A stretch of DNA of 64,000 bases from Adineta vaga (lineage: Eukaryota; Animalia; Rotifera): contig CP075497.1 in NCBI GenBank assembly GCA_021613535.1, positions 6,882,001 to 6,946,000 of the forward strand, given 5' to 3'. How positions within the stretch are numbered: position 1 is the stretch's first letter; each line of letters opens with the position of its first letter. This document shows, in pieces, positions 6,410 to 19,958 of the stretch. Under the pieces are notes generated by a model. The model had not been told where the DNA came from. It saw only the letters and a program-made list of their open reading frames with translations, and did no database searches. A program made the position numbers and the translations under genes.

Positions 6410-7519
6410 GAAGGAGTTTCTATCTAAAATGAAATTACATAATATCTAATATTTAACATGTGAATTATTTCCATAGTTTACAATAAAAGCGAATTTTATA
6501 AGTCAGATTCAATTATCTTATTTTTGAAAAAAATATTCTCTCATAGTACTACTACTGATAACTATTTCTAATCCATATTTGAATCATTGACTCAACTTAT
6601 CCTTAGACTTAAATGACATACGATTCGCTTAAGTGTACTGGCAAGTTTAAGAATCTTTCGACTAATTAACTAAATCTATTATGCATTAATAAGATTTCTA
6701 AGTTTGAGGATCAATATCAATCGATATTATTAAAACTTTTCAGATATTTCATTGACAATCAATGATAGAAAATATATCATTCTATATGGAAGCCTTGAAA
6801 ATATTTGCGAATAACCGATATACAATATTGTATTACTTACGCTTGTTTGAATTTGTGAATAGCGAATAAAAGAAGTAATTGCATCCGAGTTTTAGCCAGT
6901 CCGTACTGAATATTGCATAATCGTACTGTTTGTTTCGAACATAGTGCAAATACTTAACTAAAATAAAGTAGTAATATTTATTCTAATTTCAAAATATCTT
7001 TTCTGTTGAGTATAATTTACAAATCTAACTGATCTTGTAATAGAAGAATTGTCAATGATTTTTATTTAATGACCTTGATTGACAAATACTCATGAATTTC
7101 TTCAAACGATACAGTTCACTAGAAGAAAAACGAACTGTTCCTGTTCCCATTTTTTTTTCTTGTTCTTCAATATTGATAGGTTACTTTTTCTGACGGCAAA
7201 AATTGTTTTATCCATTACACGAAAGAGGCCGTACGTTGTCATAAATAGTTCTTACACGTTTTAATGTAAAATATATGACACTTTTTTAAATAGATAAGTT
7301 GTATCCAGTATTCACATGTACTAACAATTAAAAAGATGTTCATTTGAACGAAAATAATAGGCTATTACCTTCACATCGATACGACTTCTCCTATGATTTA
7401 CAAATGGCAGCTTCATAGAGAATGTCTCTTCAGTATCAGCCACCATTCATATTATTTATTTTACAACAAAAAGCATCTGACATTTGAAACAAAACAAAAC
7501 AATTATTGTGAAAATTATA

Positions 7520-10500
7520 CTATAGGAAGTATGGGCAATCTGGTGCTAATTTCGAACTTAGCACAATCCGTTCACTTCGTATAGAACTCTCTACATCAGT
7601 ATTTTGATTCACCGGTAGTCTTGGTCCTGATGCAACAGATTCACTACAACAGAAAATAAATATTTCTTTTTCACAAAACAAAACTACTTACGTGTCCGAT
7701 TGATCGTCACTTTTTATATACAGAGTAGCACGAATGGCTAACAAATCAGCATATTTCACTGGTGCTGGAATCGACACTGACCGAGTACATCGAGCATATG
7801 TGTAACACAATGCATAAGTTAACATTTGCACTTCATTCGGTTTCAACTTATTATCATCATACAGTACATAATAATGTGTTGGTCGACTTGTACCCTAGGA
7901 AAGTATCAAATATGTCACGGTTGATAATCAAAACAAACCACTTACAAGTGCACCAAAATGACTGTTGAGATAGAAATCATATTTGGTCACATTAGTAATG
8001 TCATGTGAATCAACAACAGTACCAGCTGGAACGTTCTTTTCTGAATTAGTTGGAAATATTCTTGTATGATGTCGTTTGCTGACAACAATGTATGTGAGAT
8101 ATGGTCGATAAACAGGTGATAGTTCAATACAAGCTTCTCGTATTCCTGTGAGTTCGTATTCGAAAACTGAATCGAATTCACTTTCCGAGATACCATCACG
8201 ATAGAAGACAATTGCAGTCGGTGGATATCCACGATGTTGCACGTATTGTGTGATGAGAGATTTCATGATTTGTTTGAGATCGACAATGAGTTCTCGACTT
8301 TCTTCTCGTGTATCGGGTGGTCGATATTGTTGATAAACTTCTTTGAAATATCGATTAGGAATATCATCTGCTGATGCGACAACAGCAACGATAGATGGTT
8401 GAGTGATAGCACCAGGAGCAGCATGACTAAGATCGGCACCGACATACATGACACGATGACCTTTGGAGAAGAATCGTTCCACTGTAGAACTAGAAGAATC
8501 GTTTGTGTATTAGGACAATTGCTTATTTAGCTTTTAAGCATAGAAAGAAACGCTTACTGTATTTTAATCAAATGATTGATTCCATTAAGTTTTGTGTTTA
8601 TTTTCAATAAGATGTTATTCAGTGTCGAATAATCTATCCTTCCGATATTTTTATTATGACGACCTACGATAGTTTCAATACGTATCATTTGTGTAATTAT
8701 TCCAAAGCCAAATTCTAACTCACACTATGAAATAAATACAGAAATATTATAAACATCATCATCATTGTGCGTCTTACCAATTTCTTTATGCTGTTATAAA
8801 TCCATGTTCTTTCTATATTTTGATCAGGTAAAATGACGAGAAAAAAAGTACAATCAGTATTTGCTATCATCATATCCTTTAAGATACTGACAATTTTCTG
8901 GTTTGAGTTATTATCCGTTTTCTGCTCGATATATATAACAGGAGGTGTGCATTTGACACCTCGCTCTTCTGCTACCATACTTAATTGATCATAGAACTCT
9001 TTACAATCATCTTGATTCATATCTGACAAATTAATCATTGCCCAAATCTTAGGAAAATCTGCTGCTTTAAAAAACTTGGTAGTTTTCAAATCCCAATGAC
9101 CCGGATTTCGCATTCCTTTCGATGTCACTCGATAATTATCAGTATAGAGAATTTCTGGCATTGGCAACACACGCGCTGGTACTGTCAACATTTTCACGTC
9201 AACATTCAGCTTCCATGCAGCAACAAAGGGATCTTCTTCGAAACGTTGTTTTCCACGATCATGACGAATGATTTCGATCATTTTTCGATGTGAAGATGGT
9301 GAAATTGTTGAGCAACGACACATAAGAGCTCTTTGTTCGTCTGTAATTTTTTTTATTCGCACTGGTTCAACATCAACCAGTTCCATCGGTATGAATGATC
9401 CATTGCGCATCTCCAATGTAGGTAAGGATGGATATCTAAATTGTTTAATATCAACATTAAATTATCAAATTCACTTTCTGCTTATACGCACTTCAATGAC
9501 ACACAATATTCTTCTCTGTAATATTCTTCTATTGTGGTCAAGCGCTTATGAGACTTCCACTGGAACTGTTGGCTACATGCAGGTAAACCAAGTTTCACTA
9601 TTTCATAGATTATTGGTTTATCTGCATTTTGTGATCGAACACGCAAATCTATTATCGAACATTATTTCACGCATCTATTTAAAAATATTTCACTTACGTT
9701 TACAGTGCTTCAGAAGAAAATCAGCGTCATTTCGATAGTTTCGATTGTGCACATCGAGATATTGAAGAACATCGTCTCCATCTGCTTTTGAAGCGTTTCG
9801 TTGTTGACCATATTTTCGTTTTCCACTTGGACTATGCAACATCACTTCACAAACAAACTCTATAAACGGCTGTTTCTTCATGAACACTGTATGTTTTACT
9901 ACAACGACAAACAACAAAACTATCATCCTGTTCCACAATACATTCGTCATCTAGACACTCACCATCCAAGTTCATCAACAATTGATGTTTTCCTTTCGAA
10001 AACACTAGACATGAATAGAACCCACGCCACATTGCTTTTCCCAATCCAAGATCCCATTCACTTTGTCTTCCATCGGCACTCGATGCAAAAAACGATCGAT
10101 TGTAGATGAATGCTGCATTCGATGAACAGTACTCATGCAGTGCAATTGACAATACCTGTTTCACCTGTTGAAGATCTTCCATTCTGTCATTAGTCAACGA
10201 TGCTGGGTCGAAGAGTTCATTGAGATTTGCGATGAGTGAGAGATCGACAGGTGATCCGACTCGTTGAACGATCACTTTGTGTGGTTCTGGCGATTGGAAC
10301 GATTGAGACCACTGATGATTTGTGCAGGTGTCTAAATGTATGAACGTGAGAATAAGAGAGGGATGATGAATGATGTGTGTTACATTTTCATCGATTTCAG
10401 GTAGTAGTTGATCGAATGAGAGTACTGTGGATTGATTATCGAAGACAATTTTGTGTGGATCAATTTCTGGATGTTTTTGACAGAGCACATGAAGCCATGA

Positions 10501-11047
10501 GTTGTAGAAGAGACTAGAATGTAATGATAAGTAGAGATAGTAAGAAGCAAAAAGATGGCTGGTGTTACCGTCGTCGATCTCGATGAATTTCGAAATCTTT
10601 CTTGTTTCGAATCTGAATGTGATATTGATAGACGAGACCTTTTCGTGGAAACTGCAAGATGGGAAAATAATTGACGAAAACTCTGTATTGTTCTCCGAGA
10701 TCACCAAGTTGATCGGGTTTTGTTGGTCGCTGGTAAGTGTTGAATTGTTCTTTGGACAGCTCGGTGACAGTCCAAAATGGATCAGGTGGTGGATTAATTC
10801 GTTTGGTAAGAGTACCGCGACCGCGACCCCGACCAATTGGTATAGGATCTGGAGTTGTTTGTGTCGAACGGTCATCACTGGATGCTGTAGAAACACCTGA
10901 ATCTGATCGATTAGCAGTTTCTGAAGAAGGAATAGAAGAGAGTGATGATGTTCTGGGTGTAGGAGATATTGAGATAGATGCATAATCATTGTGATATTTA
11001 TTGGTTTGAGCTCGGCCTCGGCCACGTGGTCGGCTTGTTTCTGACAT
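7520..11047 (-). CDS. Argonaute, copy A (N-PAZ-MID-PIWI), multi-exon; apparent 1-nt deletion near 10288
   Basis: VFVNYFP, YQYHIQI, GFYSCL, YPSLPTL...FIPMELV (PAZ), [20 protein letters not shown] (MID), [40 protein letters not shown]-terminal PYFL*. Confidence 0.92.
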
Positions 11048-11608
11048 TATCTAAAAAAATAATAAATCAGTAAGCTTGAGAAAAGTATCTAGATCAAAAT
11101 ATTTATAGAGTCATTAGCTGGGTAATTTCTCACACGGGGAAAAGCAATTTGGAAGGAAAAATGAATCATCTATCGCTGATAGATTGTTTCGAAATTTTTT
11201 ATTCTTTGACGAAATGAATCAATAAATGGGATGTGATGTTAACAAGGCGTTTGTGACTGTATAGGTGCGAATCAGAATAAAGTGGAGAACTTATGTTTCT
11301 TAGAGTTCAATTATGATCTGAAATTATTGTATAATACAGAACTCTTATTTGCGTTTTAACGACTGTTTATAGACATCTGATTCTGGTCTACATTAATATG
11401 TTTTTCAATATCAAGACAGCTTGCTACCAATGTTTTCACTAAAATCAAGATTACATTTCCATGTCAAAGAAAAAAAAATCTGTTTTTATCAGCATTCTTT
11501 TTATATCAAATTCTCATTTTACAAAAAAAATTTGAAAAAGTCAAGAACTGTAGGTTGACAAGTATATAAAAACAAGAACATTCAAACAAAAAGAAAATAT
11601 AACGGTGT

Positions 11609-14600
11609 CTATAAAAAAAATGGACAATCCGGTGCTAGTTTCGAACTTAGCACAATCCGTTCACTTCGTATAGAACTCTCTACATCAGTATTTTGATTCA
11701 CCGGTAGTCTTGGTCCTGATGCAACAGATTCACTACAACAGAAAATAAATATTTCTTTTTCACAAAACAAAACTACTTACGTGTCCGATTGATCGTCACT
11801 TTTTATATACAGAGTAGCACGAATGGCTAACAAATCAGCATATTTCACTGGTGCTGGAATCGACACTGACCGAGTACATCGAGCATATGTGTAACACAAT
11901 GCATAAGTTAACATTTGCACTTCATTCGGTTTCAACTTATTATCATCATACAGTACATAATAATGTGTTGGTCGACTTGTACCCTAGGAAAGTATCAAAT
12001 ACGTCACGGTTGATAATCAAAACAAACCACTTACAAGTGCACCAAAATGACTGTTGAGATAGAAATCATATTTGGTCGCATTAGTAATGTCATGTGAATC
12101 AACAACAGTACCAGCTGGAACGTTCTTTTCTGAATTAGTTGGGAGTAGTTTTGTATGATGTCGTTTGCTGACAACAATGTATGTGAGATATGGTCGATAA
12201 ACAGGTGATAGTTCAATACAAGCTTCTCGTATTCCTGTGAGTTCGTATTCGAAAACTGAATCGAATTCACTTTCCGAGATACCATCACGATAGAAGACAA
12301 TTGCAGTCGGTGGATATCCACGATGTTGCACGTATTGTGTGATGAGAGATTTCATGATTTGTTTGAGATCGACAATGAGTTCTCGACTTTCTTTTCGTGT
12401 ATCAGGTGGTCGATGTTGTTGATAAACTTCTTTGAAATATCGATTAGGAATATCATCTGCTGATGCGACAACAGCAACGATAGATGGTTGAGTGATAGCA
12501 CCAGGAGCAGCATGACTGAGATCGGCACCGACATACATGACACGATGACCTTTAGAGAAGAATCGTTCGACCGTTGGACTGAAAACAAAAAACGTTAATA
12601 AACATAATGAGTTATTCGTGCAGGGGACATCTCAGTTTCTAATAAGTTTATTCTGATGCAAAACTCTTTATCTAAATAAAAAAAACTTCATTTTCTTATA
12701 ATTGATTTCTCCGTGAAATAACTCTTATTCATATTGAAAACATTGGATGCAGATGTACTAATAAAGCATACATTAAGTATTAAATGTATCTCCATCTCTA
12801 TATTAGTTGCAAAATCTTAATTTATACGATTCTGAATTCTGTGATCTGCATCGGAAATGGATTAGACTAGCAAGCTCATCAGAAAATGATTAATACTACT
12901 ACCAGTATGTATGCGTACATATGCCTCAAGCGACTTATGTGACAGATGCAATATTCGTTCTCTTAGGCAATACCTACTGTCCAAGGTATATTCGAAGATT
13001 CTTAGTCATATTAGATTAGTTGGTAAACTAGAACTTACTCCACTTTGAGAACACTATTGATCCCATCTAATTTTGTGTTAATTTTCAGTAAAATATTTCC
13101 CAATTTTGCATGATCCCACTTCTCACGGTTTTGTTTAGTTCCTTTGACAGCATTTCTTGGTTCAATCATCTGGGTAGCAACTCCAAATCCCATCTCTAGT
13201 TCACACTAGAAAAGCAAATAAAGAAATCAAACCGCAATGTTGTATTCTGTCAAAAATACTTACCAGTTTTTTCAAGTTCTTGTAAGCTTCTTTATTCTTG
13301 AATGAAGTTTTCGATGGTAGAATAACGACAAAAAACTTACAGTCGCTCTTTGCCTTCATGAAGTCATTTAATGTTTCCATTACTGTTTCAATTGAGTAAC
13401 GATCATCATTACTATTGAATTCTTGATAATCAGGCATATAACATTTCATCCCCCGTTTTTCTGCTATCATACTTAATTGATCATAGAACTCTTTACAATC
13501 ATCTTGATTCATATCTGACAAATTAATCATTGCCCAAACTCTCGGAAAGTCTGATGGTTTGTGAAAAGGAGTTAGTTTCAAATCCCATGTACCAATATCG
13601 CGCACACCTGTTGATGTCACTCGATAATCTTCTGTATAAACAATCTCTGGCATTGGCAACACACGCGCTGGTACTGTCAACATTTTCACGTCAACATCCA
13701 GATTCCATGCAGCAACAAAGGGATCTTCTTCGAAACGTTGTTTTCCACGATCATGACGAATGATTTCGATCATTTTTCGATGTGAAGATGGTGAAATTGT
13801 TGAGCAACGACACATAAGAGCTCTCTGTTCGTCTGTAATTTTTTTCATTCTCACTGGTTCAACATCAACCAGTTCCATCGGTATGAATGCTCCATTGCGC
13901 ATTTCCAGTGTTGGTAATGACGGATATCTAAAGTATAATTATATTGACGATTATTTCAAATATCAAGATCTATACTTACTTCATTGACACTCCGTATTGG
14001 TTTAGGTAGTATTCCTCTACTGTAATTGTTCGCTTTTCTGACTTTAACTTAAACGTTTGACTTGCTGGAGGTAAACCAAGTTTCACTATTTCATAGATTA
14101 TTGGTTTATCTGCATTTTGTGATCGAACACGCAAATCTATTATCGAACATTATTTCACGCATCTATTTAAAAATATTTCACTTACGTTTACAGTGTTTCA
14201 GAAGAAAATCAGCTTCATTTCGATAGTTTCGATTGTGCACATCGAGATATTGAAGAACATCGGCTCCGTCTGCTTTTGAAGCGTTTCGTTGTTGACCATA
14301 TTTTCGTTTTCCACTTGGACTATGCAACATCACTTCACAAACAAACTCTATAAACGGCTGTTTCTTCATGAACACTGTATGTTTTACTACAACGACAAAC
14401 AACAAAACTATCATCCTGTTCCACAATACATTCGTCATCTAGACACTCACCATCCAAGTTCATCAACAATTGATGTTTTCCTTTCGAAAACACTAGACAT
14501 GAATAGAACCCACGCCACATTGCTTTTCCCAATCCAAGATCCCATTCACTTTGTCTTCCATCGGCACTCGATGCAAAAAACGATCGATTGTAGATGAATG

Positions 14601-15596
14601 CTGCATTCGATGAACAGTACTCATGCAGTGCAATTGACAATACCTGTTTCACCTGTTGTAGATCTTCGATTCTGTCATTAGTCAACGATGCTGGATCGAA
14701 GAGTTCATTGAGATTTGCAATGAGTGAGAGATCGACAGGTGATCCGACTCGTTGAACGATCACTTTGTGTGGTTCATGTCGATTGGAACGATTGAGACCA
14801 CTGATGATTTGTGCAGGTGTCTAAATGTATGAACATGAGAATAAGAGAGGGATGATGCGTGATGTGTGTTACATTTTCATCGATCTCAGGTAGTAGTTGA
14901 TCGAATGAGAGTACTGTGGATTGATTATCGAAGACAATTTTGTGTGAATCAACTTCTGGATGTTTTTGACCGAGCACACGAAGCCATGAGTTGTAGAAGA
15001 GACTAGAATGTATTGATAAGTAGAGATAGAAAAAAGCAAAAAGATGGCTGGTGTTACCGTCGTCGATCTCGATGAATTTCGAAATCTTTCTTGTTTCGAA
15101 TCTGAATGTGATATTGATAGACGAGACCTTTTCGTGGAAACTGCAAGATGGGAAAATAGTTGACGAAAACTTTGTATTGTTCTCCGAGATCACCAAGTTG
15201 ATCGGGTTTTGTTGGTCGATCGTTAGTAGTGAATTGTTCTTTGGACAGCTCGGTGACAGTCCAACATGGACCGGGTGGTGGATTAATTCGTTTGATAAGT
15301 GTACCGCGACCTCGACCGGTTGAAACAGTTGACGAAGCTGTCGATGGTGAACCAAAATCGCTTGACCCAGGCGAAATGGCTGTGTTTGAGGTACTTGTAG
15401 CTGTTGTTGTTCTAGATGCTACAGTGGCTGTGTCATCAGTGATAGGAGTAAGAGATGATGAAGTAATTTCAACAGTAGTAGGCAATGATGAATCTTGAGT
15501 ATCTGGTGTAGGCGTAATTGATGGAGGTGATGGAGCAACTGTCTGAGTTGTTCTTGAACCACGTGCTCGACCTTTCGGTGGTTGTCCTGAAGCCAT
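11609..15596 (-). CDS. Argonaute, copy B (N-PAZ-MID-PIWI), multi-exon; no frame disruption noticed
   Basis: Same motif series and intron positions as copy A; ends PDCPFFL*; 460-nt intron at 12579..13038. Confidence 0.93.
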
Positions 15597-16245
15597 GAGT
15601 CGTTCTCAAAAAGCAAAAAATTATGAGGGTAATAACTATAAACATGCATTTATATAGTTTTGTTTGAAGTTTCTTCTTCGACTGGGAATATTTGAGATCG
15701 AGTTGAGACGAGATTGTCTGTTCTTTTTCTTTTGCTGTTTTCTGATAGGTTAATTATAGAACCCATCCGGTTTTTAGCTTATAGACGAAAGAGGCCGTCT
15801 AGTGACATTATCTTTTCAACACTAGTTTCACTTCTGTGTAAGATTAGTATTTTCTTTTCATGCATTTTATATTATTTTGTTCGAGAAATATATTATATTA
15901 CCAGTCATTAAAAATTTTTTTTGTAAAGTTAACAGTTTCCTTTTAAGAATTGTTATACAACTGTATAGAGAAACTTCTTGGTTTATTTTTAACGAACGGA
16001 ATGTTTAGAAATCGTTCTTTTGTGTGTCAATTTTTATTTTATTCGATATACCAATATATCATTCTGTATCACAGTGCAAAAGAAAACGCTTTCGAACATC
16101 TGAAAAGATCAGTTTTGAAAGGTGACAAAAAAAACAGCTAGAATAAAAAAAAATAAAGCTGTGATATAAATGAAAACAAATGAAATGCTCAGATCAATAG
16201 GAAAAAGAAAACAGAACTGTTTTTATTCTTAATGTTCCTCATTAG

Positions 16246-17782
16246 TTACTTATATACCGAATTGAATATATTGTTAAGCGAAGGAACAACACTTTTACGA
16301 CAATCACCAATATTTGTTTGATGCTTGGCAAGTACGCAGATACCATAATAATGAACGCATGCTGCAGCAACGACAAAAACATGGAAAATTTGATGACTTT
16401 GAAACTAAACGAAAGAATTCTCTGTATAATTAATCATGAAAACACGTCAAACTTCCTTACCCAGATATCAAAGTAACCAGGAGCCAATCGTTCAGGTATA
16501 CGTGCTAATGACAAAAGAATTTTAAAATGTACATTTATATCTAAAACTTACCAGCATAAAGAGATGCACCTGTAATATATAAAACAGCCATAACTACTAA
16601 CCATTGAGCTGCACCAGCTAAAATAGTTAAAGTATTTTTAGAAATTATTTTTTCTCGAACAGAATTCAAAAGCTTGTTATCAGATGTTATGCTCTGAACA
16701 AGAACAATGTAAAATTTTACATTTGAAATCTTTCTTACATACTTGTAAAAGCGTGTTTAAAACCAAATAATAAAGCATAATGACAAGTTGGAACGAAACC
16801 AAAAAGACCAAAAGCAATGAAAAGAACTAATAGATTAATATTAAAGAAAAAAGAACAGTAGAATTATTTGTTGATTCAAAATATAAAGAAAGCATACGTG
16901 CTCGATACGTTCGATATTCTGGTGCTGCAAATTTATCCCACATGGAAACAATAATACAACCTGTACCCAATGTAATAGTAATTAACAAATAAGCTACTTT
17001 TGTTCCAAACTCGCAATAAAATCCATAATAAATCCACGGAATAAATGATGAAATAATCAAAATTGATATTCCACAATAATCAAGTCTATAAAACACATAT
17101 AAAATTGTCGGTAATGAGATGAAAATTAAGTTCTAGACCTGCACTTACTTATTAAAAAGTTTCGAAACCTTTGGTGAGTGACAATAAACTGTATGATATA
17201 AAGTTGAAAATAATAAACAAACGATAGCGCCAAGAAAGAATGCACCAAATGTGATTTTCTTTTCAATATGAACTTCAGATGATGGACGTGTTGTGAAATA
17301 GATAGCAATGATAATAAAAAATAAAGTTCCCAGTAAATGTGTCCAGATATTCACTGTTTCTGTATGTAGACGAAAGATGGATGCAAAGCATTGTTTAAAA
17401 CTTGGCATTGGTGGACGATGTCCTGAGATGAGATACTCATTGTCAAGTAACCAATGTGGAAGATGACTATGATCGACAACATATTGTACAACAAGTTTAC
17501 CAACTTCTTTAGCTTGTTCAACACATTTTGTTGGCATTTCGAAAACTGTATCCATTAGTTCATCCTGGTCATCAGGTGAATCAGGTTGGGATGGATAAGA
17601 ATGACTTCGTTCATAGGTTGAGTGGGCATCATGATCACCAGTAGGTTCACTCTAAATATATAAATGATTAATTTCTTTTTCAAAATAATAAATCTTATTC
17701 ATACGAGAAGACGATCAGGTATTCGTCGTCGAATATCTGTCTCAGTTGAATCATGATCCTCATTTGCCGTTTTACTCTCCAT
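16246..17782 (-). CDS. Adiponectin receptor / PAQR family protein, copy 1
   Basis: LPHWLLDNEYLISGHRPP, HTETVNIWTHL, STLYHTVYCHS, LDYCGIS, RIPERLAPG, FQSHQIFHVFVV (PAQR Zn-binding His motifs). Confidence 0.92.
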
Positions 17783-18184: not shown

Positions 18185-19958
18185 TTAACTTATCATTGCA
18201 GCTACTGGAGAAGTACTTGGATTTAATATATTTCGACAATCGCCAAAATAATTCGTTTGATTACGTGATAGTATACATATTCCATAATAATGAACACAAG
18301 CTGCAGCAACAACGAAAATATGAAATAGTTGATGACTTTGAAACTAATATTATACAAGAAGTTAGTTAGTTAGTAAATAAGAACTTACAAAAGATATTTA
18401 TACACTTACCCATATATCAAAAACGCCGGGTGCTAATCGTTCAGGAATTCGTGCTAGATGAAAAATAAATATATAGAAATAAATTTTATCATTATGTACA
18501 TTTATTTACCAGCATAGATACAAGCACCGGTGACGTAAAGTGCCGCAACTAATAGTAAATATTGAGTGGCACCGGCTAAAAAGTAAAGATATTATAATAA
18601 TTAAATTAAAATATGACACTATTGATTTTGAGTCAAGTAAAAGAAACTAGTCATCTTACCTGTAAAAGCATGTTCAACTCCAAATCGTATAATATAATGA
18701 CATGTAGGGATAAAACCAAATACACCAAATGTAATGAAGAGTACTATAGAAAAATGAAATATTTTCAATAAAGAAATGATTTTTTTTATAAAAAATTTAC
18801 AAGCACGATAGACTCGATAATCGGACGAAGAAAACCTATCCCACATTGATATAACCATACAGGCAATTCCTAATATTCCAATTAAGGTCAAATATGCTAC
18901 TTTTGTACCAAATTCACAATAGAACTGATAATAAAGTAGTGGAACAATTGATCCAATAATTAATATGGCTATTCCACAATAATCCAATCTAAATATTCAC
19001 AATACATTGCATTGAAATTATTTTTTATTTTCTCTTATCTTACTTGCTGAAAAATTTCGAAATTTTCGGTGAATGACAGTAAAGTGTATGATATAATGTT
19101 GAACATAATAAGCAGATAATAGCGCCAAGAAAAAATGCACCAAAAATGATTTTTTTCTCCATGTGTACTTCACTTGATGGACGCGTTGTGAAATAGATAG
19201 CAGTAATTACAAAAAATAAAGTTCCCAGTAAATGTGTCCAGATATTTACTGTTTCTGTATGTAGACGAAAGATGGATGCAAAGCATTGTTTAAAACTTGG
19301 CATTGGTGGACGATGTCCTGAGAGGAGATACTCATTGTCAAGTAACCAATGTGGAAGATGACTATGATCGACAACATATTGTACAACAAGTTTACCAACT
19401 TCTTTAGCTTGTTCAACACATTTTGTTGGAACTTCAAGAACTGTATCAATTAATTCATCAGTATTGTCTCGCAGGTCAGTATAAGATAGATGAAAAGGAC
19501 TTCGAAGACGAGTATCGCATTGTGCATCAATACAAAATGCTGGTTCACTCTGAAAATAAAAGATAGTTTTGAGAAAAAATATGTGATTCACTTCTGATTC
19601 ATCAAGAATAAAGAGTGGAAGAGAAAATCGAATAGAACTGGTTATTCATCATCTTATGTTAGGTCAAGAGAATAAGAAAAGCAAATAGAATATGTAATAG
19701 TGATTACTCATAAGGATAATGAATTAAACCATGATCGACTATAAGGAAAAAGATCATGCTACCATATTTCATCTTTTATTTCTGACAATCAAATTTGATA
19801 TGGTTTCGAGAAAGATTTATTCATTCAATTCTATGACTACATACTCGTGGTCGAGTTAATGTTCGTTTTCGAACTGTTTGTTCTGGTGAATCCTGATCAC
19901 TGACTGGAATTGTGTCTGAGAATAGTTCATCTTTCATTCTTTGATACGACGAATCCAT
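18185..19958 (-). CDS. Adiponectin receptor / PAQR family protein, copy 2
   Basis: Same PAQR motifs (ETVNIWTH, STLYHTLYCHS, LDYCGIA, RIPERLAPG, QSHQLFH); matching exon structure. Confidence 0.92.

Follow-up and report, generated by a model that had tools for sequence, protein, structure and literature searches.

In the genome of the bdelloid rotifer Adineta vaga, two Argonaute genes lie in tandem within a stretch of 64,000 nucleotides (nt) of contig CP075497.1 (GenBank assembly GCA_021613535.1, positions 6,882,001 to 6,946,000 of the forward strand). This stretch, referred to here as the window, is AT-rich (approximately 30% GC), and all positions below are counted from its first letter. The genes, copy B upstream and copy A downstream, are both on the minus strand, have ten exons each, and encode Argonautes of the AGO clade (Table 1). 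Near-identical and strongly diverged blocks alternate along the two copies, and comparison with other bdelloids suggests that they are old neighbours which evolve in concert, except at a short loop of the MID domain.

The translation of copy B matches the NCBI protein I4U23_029395 of A. vaga (P0227) exactly, and the neighbouring I4U23_029394 (P0229) is the counterpart of copy A; the public records of both are labelled as hypothetical proteins. ArgoN, ArgoL1, PAZ, ArgoL2, and Piwi of Pfam are found in both proteins, and ArgoMid is found in A only, below the cut-off. Among solved structures, the top match of B is human AGO3 (E = 4.8e-104), and the full-length alignment with AGO3 covers residues 134–992 in the domain order N – L1 – PAZ – L2 – MID – PIWI. 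Human AGO1–4 are matched with E-values from 1e-99 to 5e-104, as against approximately 1e-29 to 1e-33 for chains of the PIWI clade. The catalytic motifs, including NSHFGALGTSRP, align to GADVTH, RQEIIQDL, FYRDGVSE, and CSHAGIQGTSRP of human AGO3, which we take, from human AGO2, to hold the catalytic D, E, D, and H. These DEDH motifs are the same in A and B, and both copies, as they carry the tetrad, are predicted to be slicer-competent. The 5'-phosphate pocket Y-K-Q-K-K is also kept in both (AYKNLKK, ATQMI, and LLKINTKL in B; IYNSIKK, ITQMI, and LLKINTKL in A). In the PAZ domain, the F of QTF/QQF and the aromatic residues of EEYY..Y, which presumably line the 3'-end pocket as in human AGO2, are the same in both copies.

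The gene models were examined with Logan contigs from two DNA runs and two RNA-like runs (X12 and X19), aligned over 9300–15299. All nine introns of B have GT..AG ends on the minus strand and are backed by spliced X12 contigs, although for intron 1 the exon-2 end of the joint mapped to copy A, which is identical there. The long intron 7 of B is removed in one piece, as indicated by the X12 joint 12578->13039, and no sign of a microexon was seen inside it. Introns 1, 2, 4, and 5 of A appear as joints in X12 and X19 contigs, and the A-specific splice from MID to PIWI is a loose end. A 52-nt intron (10332–10383 in A and 14821–14872 in B), which had been overlooked in a first-pass annotation of this sequence, was revealed by the RNA contigs. 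A candidate frameshift of B at 14776 was dropped, since this intron restores an intact B and the gap lies in A. MID sequences specific to A and to B are both found in spliced X12 contigs; therefore, both copies are transcribed and processed.

Two irregularities were seen in these contigs. In X12, 95 nt are skipped at 13538–13634, with non-canonical CT..CT ends, at the edge of a stretch of MID that is identical in the two copies; this is most likely a contig switching between the A and B copies and not a true splice. In the PIWI region of B (11935–12479), there are about ten places where contigs of all four runs show the A state and none has B-specific letters. This may be due to bubble-popping during contig assembly, or the PIWI blocks may be even more alike in those samples.

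To describe the mosaic, A (7300–11300) and B (11390–15800) were aligned with MAFFT and scored in 60-nt bins, with blastn in addition, and synonymous (dS) and nonsynonymous (dN) divergence was calculated by the method of Nei and Gojobori. The first-pass annotation had described a sharp alternation of near-identical and diverged blocks, in which silent sites and introns were also homogenised, and had quoted one PAZ peptide from each copy. Both peptides are present, and the alternation was recovered where it had been placed, both in the MAFFT bins and by blastn, with dS of 0.05–0.14 in the homogenised blocks as compared with more than 2 in the diverged MID and PAZ core. Introns follow the same layout: introns 1–4, 8, and 9 are 94–100% identical, and introns 5 and 6 are 58–65% identical (65% for intron 5). 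The homogenised PIWI block stops exactly at the stop codon. Outside one island of 100% identity, the bins of the MID domain are 42–70% identical, and the N-terminal tail, which is 20 residues longer in B, and both flanks are 30–50% identical. Intron 7 is 68 nt long in A (8490–8557) and 460 nt long in B (12579–13038), and no Rfam match was found in the long intron of B or elsewhere in the locus. The diverged blocks have dN/dS ratios of 0.15–0.18.

Table 1. The two tandem Argonaute genes of the A. vaga window, their homogenised and diverged blocks, and the MID loops (positions in the window)
Feature	Copy A	Copy B	Strand	Description
Copy B, upstream gene		11609-15596	minus	10 exons; 3099-nt coding sequence; 1032 aa; open reading frame intact
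Copy B exons		15596-15058, 15002-14873, 14820-14451, 14386-14186, 14136-13980, 13927-13264, 13205-13039, 12578-12035, 11983-11781, 11732-11609	minus
Copy A, downstream gene	7520-11047		minus	10 exons as in B; ~1010 aa; X placed at the one-base gap
Copy A exons	11047-10569, 10513-10384, 10331-9963, 9898-9698, 9648-9492, 9435-8778, 8724-8558, 8489-7946, 7894-7692, 7643-7520		minus
N-terminal tail, diverged	10829-11047	15318-15596	minus	dS 1.25, dN 0.74; low-complexity and RG-containing in A
N/L1/PAZ-start block, homogenised	9582-10828	14069-15317	minus	92-100% identity; dS 0.055; introns 1-4 inside
PAZ core and intron 5, diverged	9436-9581	13928-14068	minus	55-62% identity; dS 2.2, dN 0.34
PAZ-end/L2 block, homogenised	9146-9435	13638-13927	minus	95-100% identity; dS 0.137
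Identical island within MID	8966-9044	13458-13536	minus	100% identity; 23 codons; dS 0, dN 0
MID with short intron 7, diverged	8492-8965	12581-13457	minus	dS 2.7, dN 0.49, dN/dS 0.18; exon 7, intron 6, 3' half of exon 6
PIWI/C-terminal block, homogenised	7520-8491	11609-12580	minus	97.7% identity over 972 nt; dS 0.061; introns 8 and 9 inside
MID loop of B, up type		13285-13314	minus	10 residues, between conserved ILP and the 5'-phosphate Tyr (codon 13282-13284)
MID loop of A, dn type	8799-8825		minus	DQNIERTWI, 9 residues, ahead of Tyr codon 8796-8798; pattern [RK][TS]xIY
One-base gap in exon 3	10287/10288		minus	relative to B and to the A-like contig of DNA run X3

Up to 113 consecutive codons are identical between A and B, and the maximum in 10,000 shuffles was 66. 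In the homogenised blocks, 32 of 503 synonymous sites differ, as compared with 78 of 113 in the diverged ones (Fisher p 1e-44). Therefore, the clustering into blocks is far beyond chance. A collapsed or chimeric assembly, which had been named as a possible artefact, is argued against by the short-read contigs of two independent DNA runs, since these end at the block borders and then run on into A-type and B-type sequence, with depths of approximately 25–30 in the unique blocks and 53–72, about twofold, in the shared ones; the same layout is also present in independent assemblies of other species. There was no sign of GC-biased conversion, as GC at third codon positions in the homogenised blocks is not higher than elsewhere. 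Two neighbouring HlyIII genes in tandem (16884–17573 and 18784–19474) are 78% identical over 835 nt and have no mosaic, and it follows that homogenisation is not a property of the region. These PAQR-like genes immediately precede the Argonaute pair on its upstream side, and they occur as duplicates in A. steineri and Rotaria as well. Since both MID pockets and the DEDH tetrad are intact, dN/dS of the diverged MID is 0.18, and copy-specific MID sequences occur in spliced RNA contigs, A and B are both likely to be working genes.

Relatives of the pair were found by an exon-level search with exon 6 of B, which gave 62 exon-sized open reading frames (ORFs) in metagenome and genome assemblies, and the loci L001–L014 lie on contigs fetched from such assemblies (L012 and L014 are from Adineta steineri). 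A query with a Rotaria family member returned full-length proteins named from A. vaga, A. steineri, A. ricciae, and five Rotaria species, and a partial one from Didymodactylos. With the L2–MID exon as the query, seven representatives among 1.8 billion proteins fell below 1e-30, so that the family appears isolated; the high-scoring relatives are from bdelloids only, and the full-length representative that ranks next has 38% identity across L2 and MID.

Tandem pairs are present in A. vaga, L001, L002, L003, L004, L005 (which is also L006 and L007), L010, and L014 of A. steineri, and a single Argonaute is present at L008, L011, and L012, the last being an A. steineri haplotype. The gene order PI3K – HlyIII – AGO – AGO – two genes – 7tm_1 is common to the A. 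vaga window and the loci of the relatives. In seven of the eight pairs, the intron that separates MID from PIWI is long in the upstream copy (370–610 nt) and measures 55–90 nt in the downstream copy, as estimated from tblastn coordinates. With the shared gene order, the long upstream intron, and the loop types linked to position, which are described below, it is clear that one duplication is shared by these lineages and was not repeated in each of them. The sequence of the long intron is poorly conserved between upstream copies (the window, L001–L005, and L014). In the downstream copies of L003 (14451–15108), L004 (9547–9982), and L014 (11347–12444), the intron between L1/PAZ start and PAZ core is long (430–1100 nt), whereas it is short in the upstream copies and in A. 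vaga.

Within pairs, N, L1, L2, and PIWI are 90–100% identical, while orthologues are 50–85% identical. In maximum-likelihood trees of PIWI and of N/L1/L2, the copies pair by locus in all eight loci with support of 97–100. When the upstream copies were forced into one clade, the cost was 483 log-likelihood units for PIWI and 863 for N/L1/L2 (p 2.2e-12 and 3.2e-5, respectively, in the approximately unbiased (AU) test), and orthology by position is thus rejected for these regions. The proposal of the first-pass annotation, an old duplication repeatedly homogenised by gene conversion, therefore gains support, and the sequences point to a pair that evolves in concert by recurrent conversion between old neighbours. 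The single gene of L012 (9000–16000), compared with L014 (4300–16500), joins an upstream-type gene to the 3' flank of the downstream gene, and looks like the product of an unequal crossover in the homogenised PIWI block, which would amount to copy-number variation within A. steineri.

One segment stays distinct across the pairs. When within-pair identity was averaged over the six pairs that carry both types of loop described here, the minimum was at the last 14 codons of exon 6 (MID1 columns 112–125). At the DNA level, this stretch and intron 6 are covered by four 30-nt windows, which are 40–70% identical in all six dimorphic pairs, and 50–60% identical in L003. In A. steineri and L003 the windows on either side of the loop and intron 6 are mostly 80–100% identical, and the proteins of the Rotaria magnacalcarata pair are near-identical up to the loop. 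In the HMMER alignment, the loop stretch of B aligns to ILP-GKTP-V-Y-AEVKR of human AGO1 and AGO3 and is located directly before the 5'-phosphate Tyr; therefore, it is identified as the nucleotide-specificity loop. In human AGO2 this loop is reportedly numbered 523–527 by Frank et al. (2010). Loop and Tyr set the 5'-base preference in human and plant Argonautes (PMC5084781; PMC12908457, citing Frank et al. 2010, 2012).

The loop occurs in two types that depend on position in the pair. The up type, in the upstream copy of all six pairs, has 10 residues with Lys at 2 and 8, a small residue (A/G/T) before the Tyr, and Lys or Arg after it. The dn type, in the downstream copy of all six, has nine residues with Thr or Ser three residues before the Tyr and Ile directly before it. 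Hence the columns fixed by type are the indel, K versus T/S, and A/G/T versus I, and wherever a pair has the 10-residue loop (6/6), it is in the upstream gene. Lys 2 and 8 are invariant in the six upstream copies, in five further named 10-residue loops, and in 15 metagenomic exon ORFs; among the 62 exon-level ORFs, 15 are of the up type and 19 of the dn type. Both types are found in named proteins of Adineta and of Rotaria, which belong to different orders. In a tree of the loop region (44 columns, rooted with the sister subfamily), the eleven 10-residue copies group together in a single clade (92/97, and 94% of the bootstrap trees); they come from A. vaga, A. steineri, three Rotaria species, and metagenomic loci. 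The sister subfamily also has a nine-residue ..R.xIY loop, and thus the dn type looks ancestral.

Two other differences between A and B are peculiar to A. vaga. The PAZ core is 90–97% identical within the L001 and L002 pairs, so its divergence is specific to A. vaga, where the PAZ core of B is an outlier against every relative. No signature separating upstream from downstream copies across species was found in the PAZ core, the start of MID, or the N-terminal region. The wide divergence of MID is likewise confined to A. vaga, as the MID flanks of A. steineri and R. magnacalcarata are homogenised up to the loop. The statement that nearly all of MID is diverged is thus correct for A. vaga but does not extend to these relatives, and the idea that the pair escapes homogenisation where guide specificity is set can be kept for MID, narrowed to the loop and intron 6 of the six dimorphic pairs, and not for the PAZ core. 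Exon 7 of A (8558–8724) and the downstream copy of A. ricciae (P0228) have VGRH..N.G[RK]IDYS, where all other members have NA.IGTK..KWDYAKL, with the loss of a conserved Trp. Since it is shared with A. ricciae, this odd MID tail of A is old within its lineage.

A proposed history of the pair can be described as follows. A bdelloid-specific Argonaute of the AGO clade was probably duplicated before the split of Adinetida and Philodinida. Gene conversion, and at times unequal crossing-over, has since repeatedly overwritten N, L1, L2, and PIWI, including introns and silent sites, and such recurrent overwriting between neighbours leaves both proteins with a shared scaffold and a shared DEDH core. 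The loop codons and intron 6 have escaped in every lineage that carries both loop types, the upstream copy keeping a derived 10-residue loop with two invariant Lys and the downstream copy an ancestral-looking loop of nine residues. Convertants of the loop may be removed by selection, because the two loops would differ in their preference for the 5' end of the guide, and two populations of small RNA could thereby be sorted onto an otherwise identical effector. We consider it probable that ancient tandem duplicates evolve in concert in this manner while selection against convertants holds the loops apart. Selection as the cause is favoured by the conservation of the types across orders, the homogenisation of the flanks up to the loop, the dN/dS of 0.18 in MID, and the intact pockets of both copies, and A and B would accordingly be expected to load different guides. 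A more specific version is tentative, though possible: 5'-end sorting would take place on a shared, co-evolving Argonaute chassis, in which the two-Lys loop fits the upstream copy to a distinct class of guides and the downstream copy keeps the ancestral preference. The distinct class could be products of the expanded RNA-dependent RNA polymerases (RdRPs), with a particular 5' base or with extra 5' phosphates.

Several observations weigh against the role given to selection and to two working proteins. The whole-MID tree still pairs the copies by locus and does not separate upstream from downstream; with the 83 columns of the C-terminal half of MID, an A+B clade is not rejected by the AU test (p 0.23) and the types are separated weakly. 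The type signal therefore rests on approximately 45 columns. The L003/L004 lineage has two nine-residue 'AY' loops and lacks the up type, although L003 is still diverged there, and with the single-copy loci L008, L011, and L012 this indicates that the dimorphism is not indispensable everywhere. Further, the island spans intron 6 and adjoins the long non-homologous intron 7, so that heterology alone could hinder conversion, and copy A is frameshifted in this assembly.

The hindrance by heterology can be taken as an explanation in itself, in which the loops are functionally equivalent and the island is simply too diverged for conversion, given the 3-nt indel, intron 6, and the 370–610-nt insertion in the upstream intron 7. 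It accounts for the inclusion of a non-coding intron in the island. In A. vaga, moreover, the borders of the blocks are themselves heterologies (the length of intron 7, and the stop codon, beyond which the 3' flanks are unrelated), and divergence extends far beyond the loop. However, it does not predict that Lys 2 and 8 would be invariant in every 10-residue loop seen, or that Ile-Tyr would be kept in the downstream copies of six pairs; such conservation across orders points to purifying selection within each loop type rather than to drift. On either side of the loop, homogenisation comes within a few codons of it in A. steineri, R. magnacalcarata, and L003, so that gap repair over a heterology of about 120 nt should have had many chances during a very long period. 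We regard a purely neutral barrier, which is the main rival, as rather unlikely on these grounds. A different origin of the mosaic, by which a recent duplication (dS of approximately 0.05) was followed by ectopic conversion of one copy, whose MID and PAZ core would derive as a cassette from a distant third paralogue, would place saturated and near-zero dS side by side with no need for a long-term escape, and would suit the outlying PAZ core of B. No donor was found for it: the sole other family member in A. vaga, I4U23_013631, has 33–51% identity over MID and the PAZ core. Synteny, both loop types, and the long intron 7 that is linked to position are common to A. steineri and more distant bdelloids, and the MID tail of A (VGRH..IDYS) is shared with A. 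ricciae, all of which indicates that the difference between A and B is old and orthologous; the import of a cassette is accordingly very improbable.

The frameshift leads to another alternative, in which one gene works and A decays as a pseudogene of this strain, so that the pair would not yield two effectors at present. Once the RNA-supported intron 2 is removed, the one-base gap in exon 3 brings A to a stop at codon 222, and the public model I4U23_029394 obtains its ORF solely by keeping introns, as it reads through introns 2 and 3 and so bridges the gap. The frame could be reopened by retention of intron 2 (52 nt) or by an AG 20 nt beyond the normal acceptor (exon 3 from 10311), and no support for either was seen in the RNA-like contigs. 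Decay is, however, difficult to reconcile with a single defect in 3 kb, with two in-frame splice alternatives, and with the A-specific MID and PAZ sequences in spliced RNA contigs. The A-like contig of DNA run X3 carries an extra 'A' behind 10287, as well as T>C at 10285, which suggests that the gap is an allele or a consensus error; an indel in the consensus is plausible, since a near-identical paralogue may confound polishing with short reads. A decaying copy A is thus improbable in our judgement. The earlier description of the pair as two slicers is therefore a prediction at most: the reading frame of B encodes an intact protein of 1032 residues with DEDH, whereas the assembled A loses its frame in exon 3 if no alternative splice rescues it. 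As regards annotation, the I4U23_029394 model keeps two introns to bridge one base.

Concerted evolution with selected islands is known from the primate red/green opsins and from RHD/RHCE, and conversion opposed by selection at functionally differing sites is an established principle in other gene families; models of concerted evolution in which islands are kept apart by selection are said to have been developed by Innan and Teshima. As in the opsins and RHD/RHCE, the neighbours here are homogenised including their introns, while functional segments remain distinct and orthologous across species. The rotifer pair differs in that it belongs to an asexual lineage and that the protected segment is a single loop of approximately 15 codons. 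In the asexual bdelloids, conversion is thought to be pervasive. A literature search found no paper on tandem concerted evolution of Argonautes or on a protected specificity loop.

The same element, a loop directly before the Tyr that stacks on guide base 1, is described for Arabidopsis AGO1, AGO2, and AGO5 and for human AGO2 (Frank et al. 2010, 2012, as summarised in PMC12908457 and PMC5084781). The Arabidopsis paralogues sort small RNAs by their 5' nucleotide with differing loops; the rotifer pair likewise has distinct loops, by which sorting may occur. The rotifer loops, counted from LP to Y, are 9–10 residues long as compared with five in human AGO, and whereas the plant Argonautes have diverged throughout, the rotifer paralogues are otherwise near-identical through conversion.

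The numbers of Argonaute and RdRP genes are unusually high in bdelloid rotifers. Nowell et al. (2021) (PMC7943196) described the bdelloid Argonaute expansion with its 'BDAGO' clades, in the same organisms and gene family as the A/B pair; the copies were counted and placed on trees, and the word 'tandem' does not occur in that paper. In Caenorhabditis elegans, WAGO secondary Argonautes bind RdRP products (PMC12908457). Like the A/B pair, WAGOs are a lineage-specific AGO expansion in an animal with many RdRP genes; however, they have an altered HKQK pocket and most are without slicer residues, while A and B keep the canonical Y-K-Q-K pocket and DEDH. A ping-pong signature is absent from A. vaga, and compensation by RdRPs has been proposed (PMC12256650).

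The separation of the two loop types is older than the split between the bdelloid orders and has been maintained since. If selection is the cause, the pair would show cleanly how selection can counteract gene conversion in an asexual animal. The contest between the two would then amount to a natural loop-swap experiment, in which the determinant of specificity is marked to approximately 15 codons. The two proteins would load small RNAs with different 5' ends, and a swap of about ten residues should swap the preference. The A/B pair thus gives a direct handle on the roles of the lineage-specific bdelloid Argonautes.

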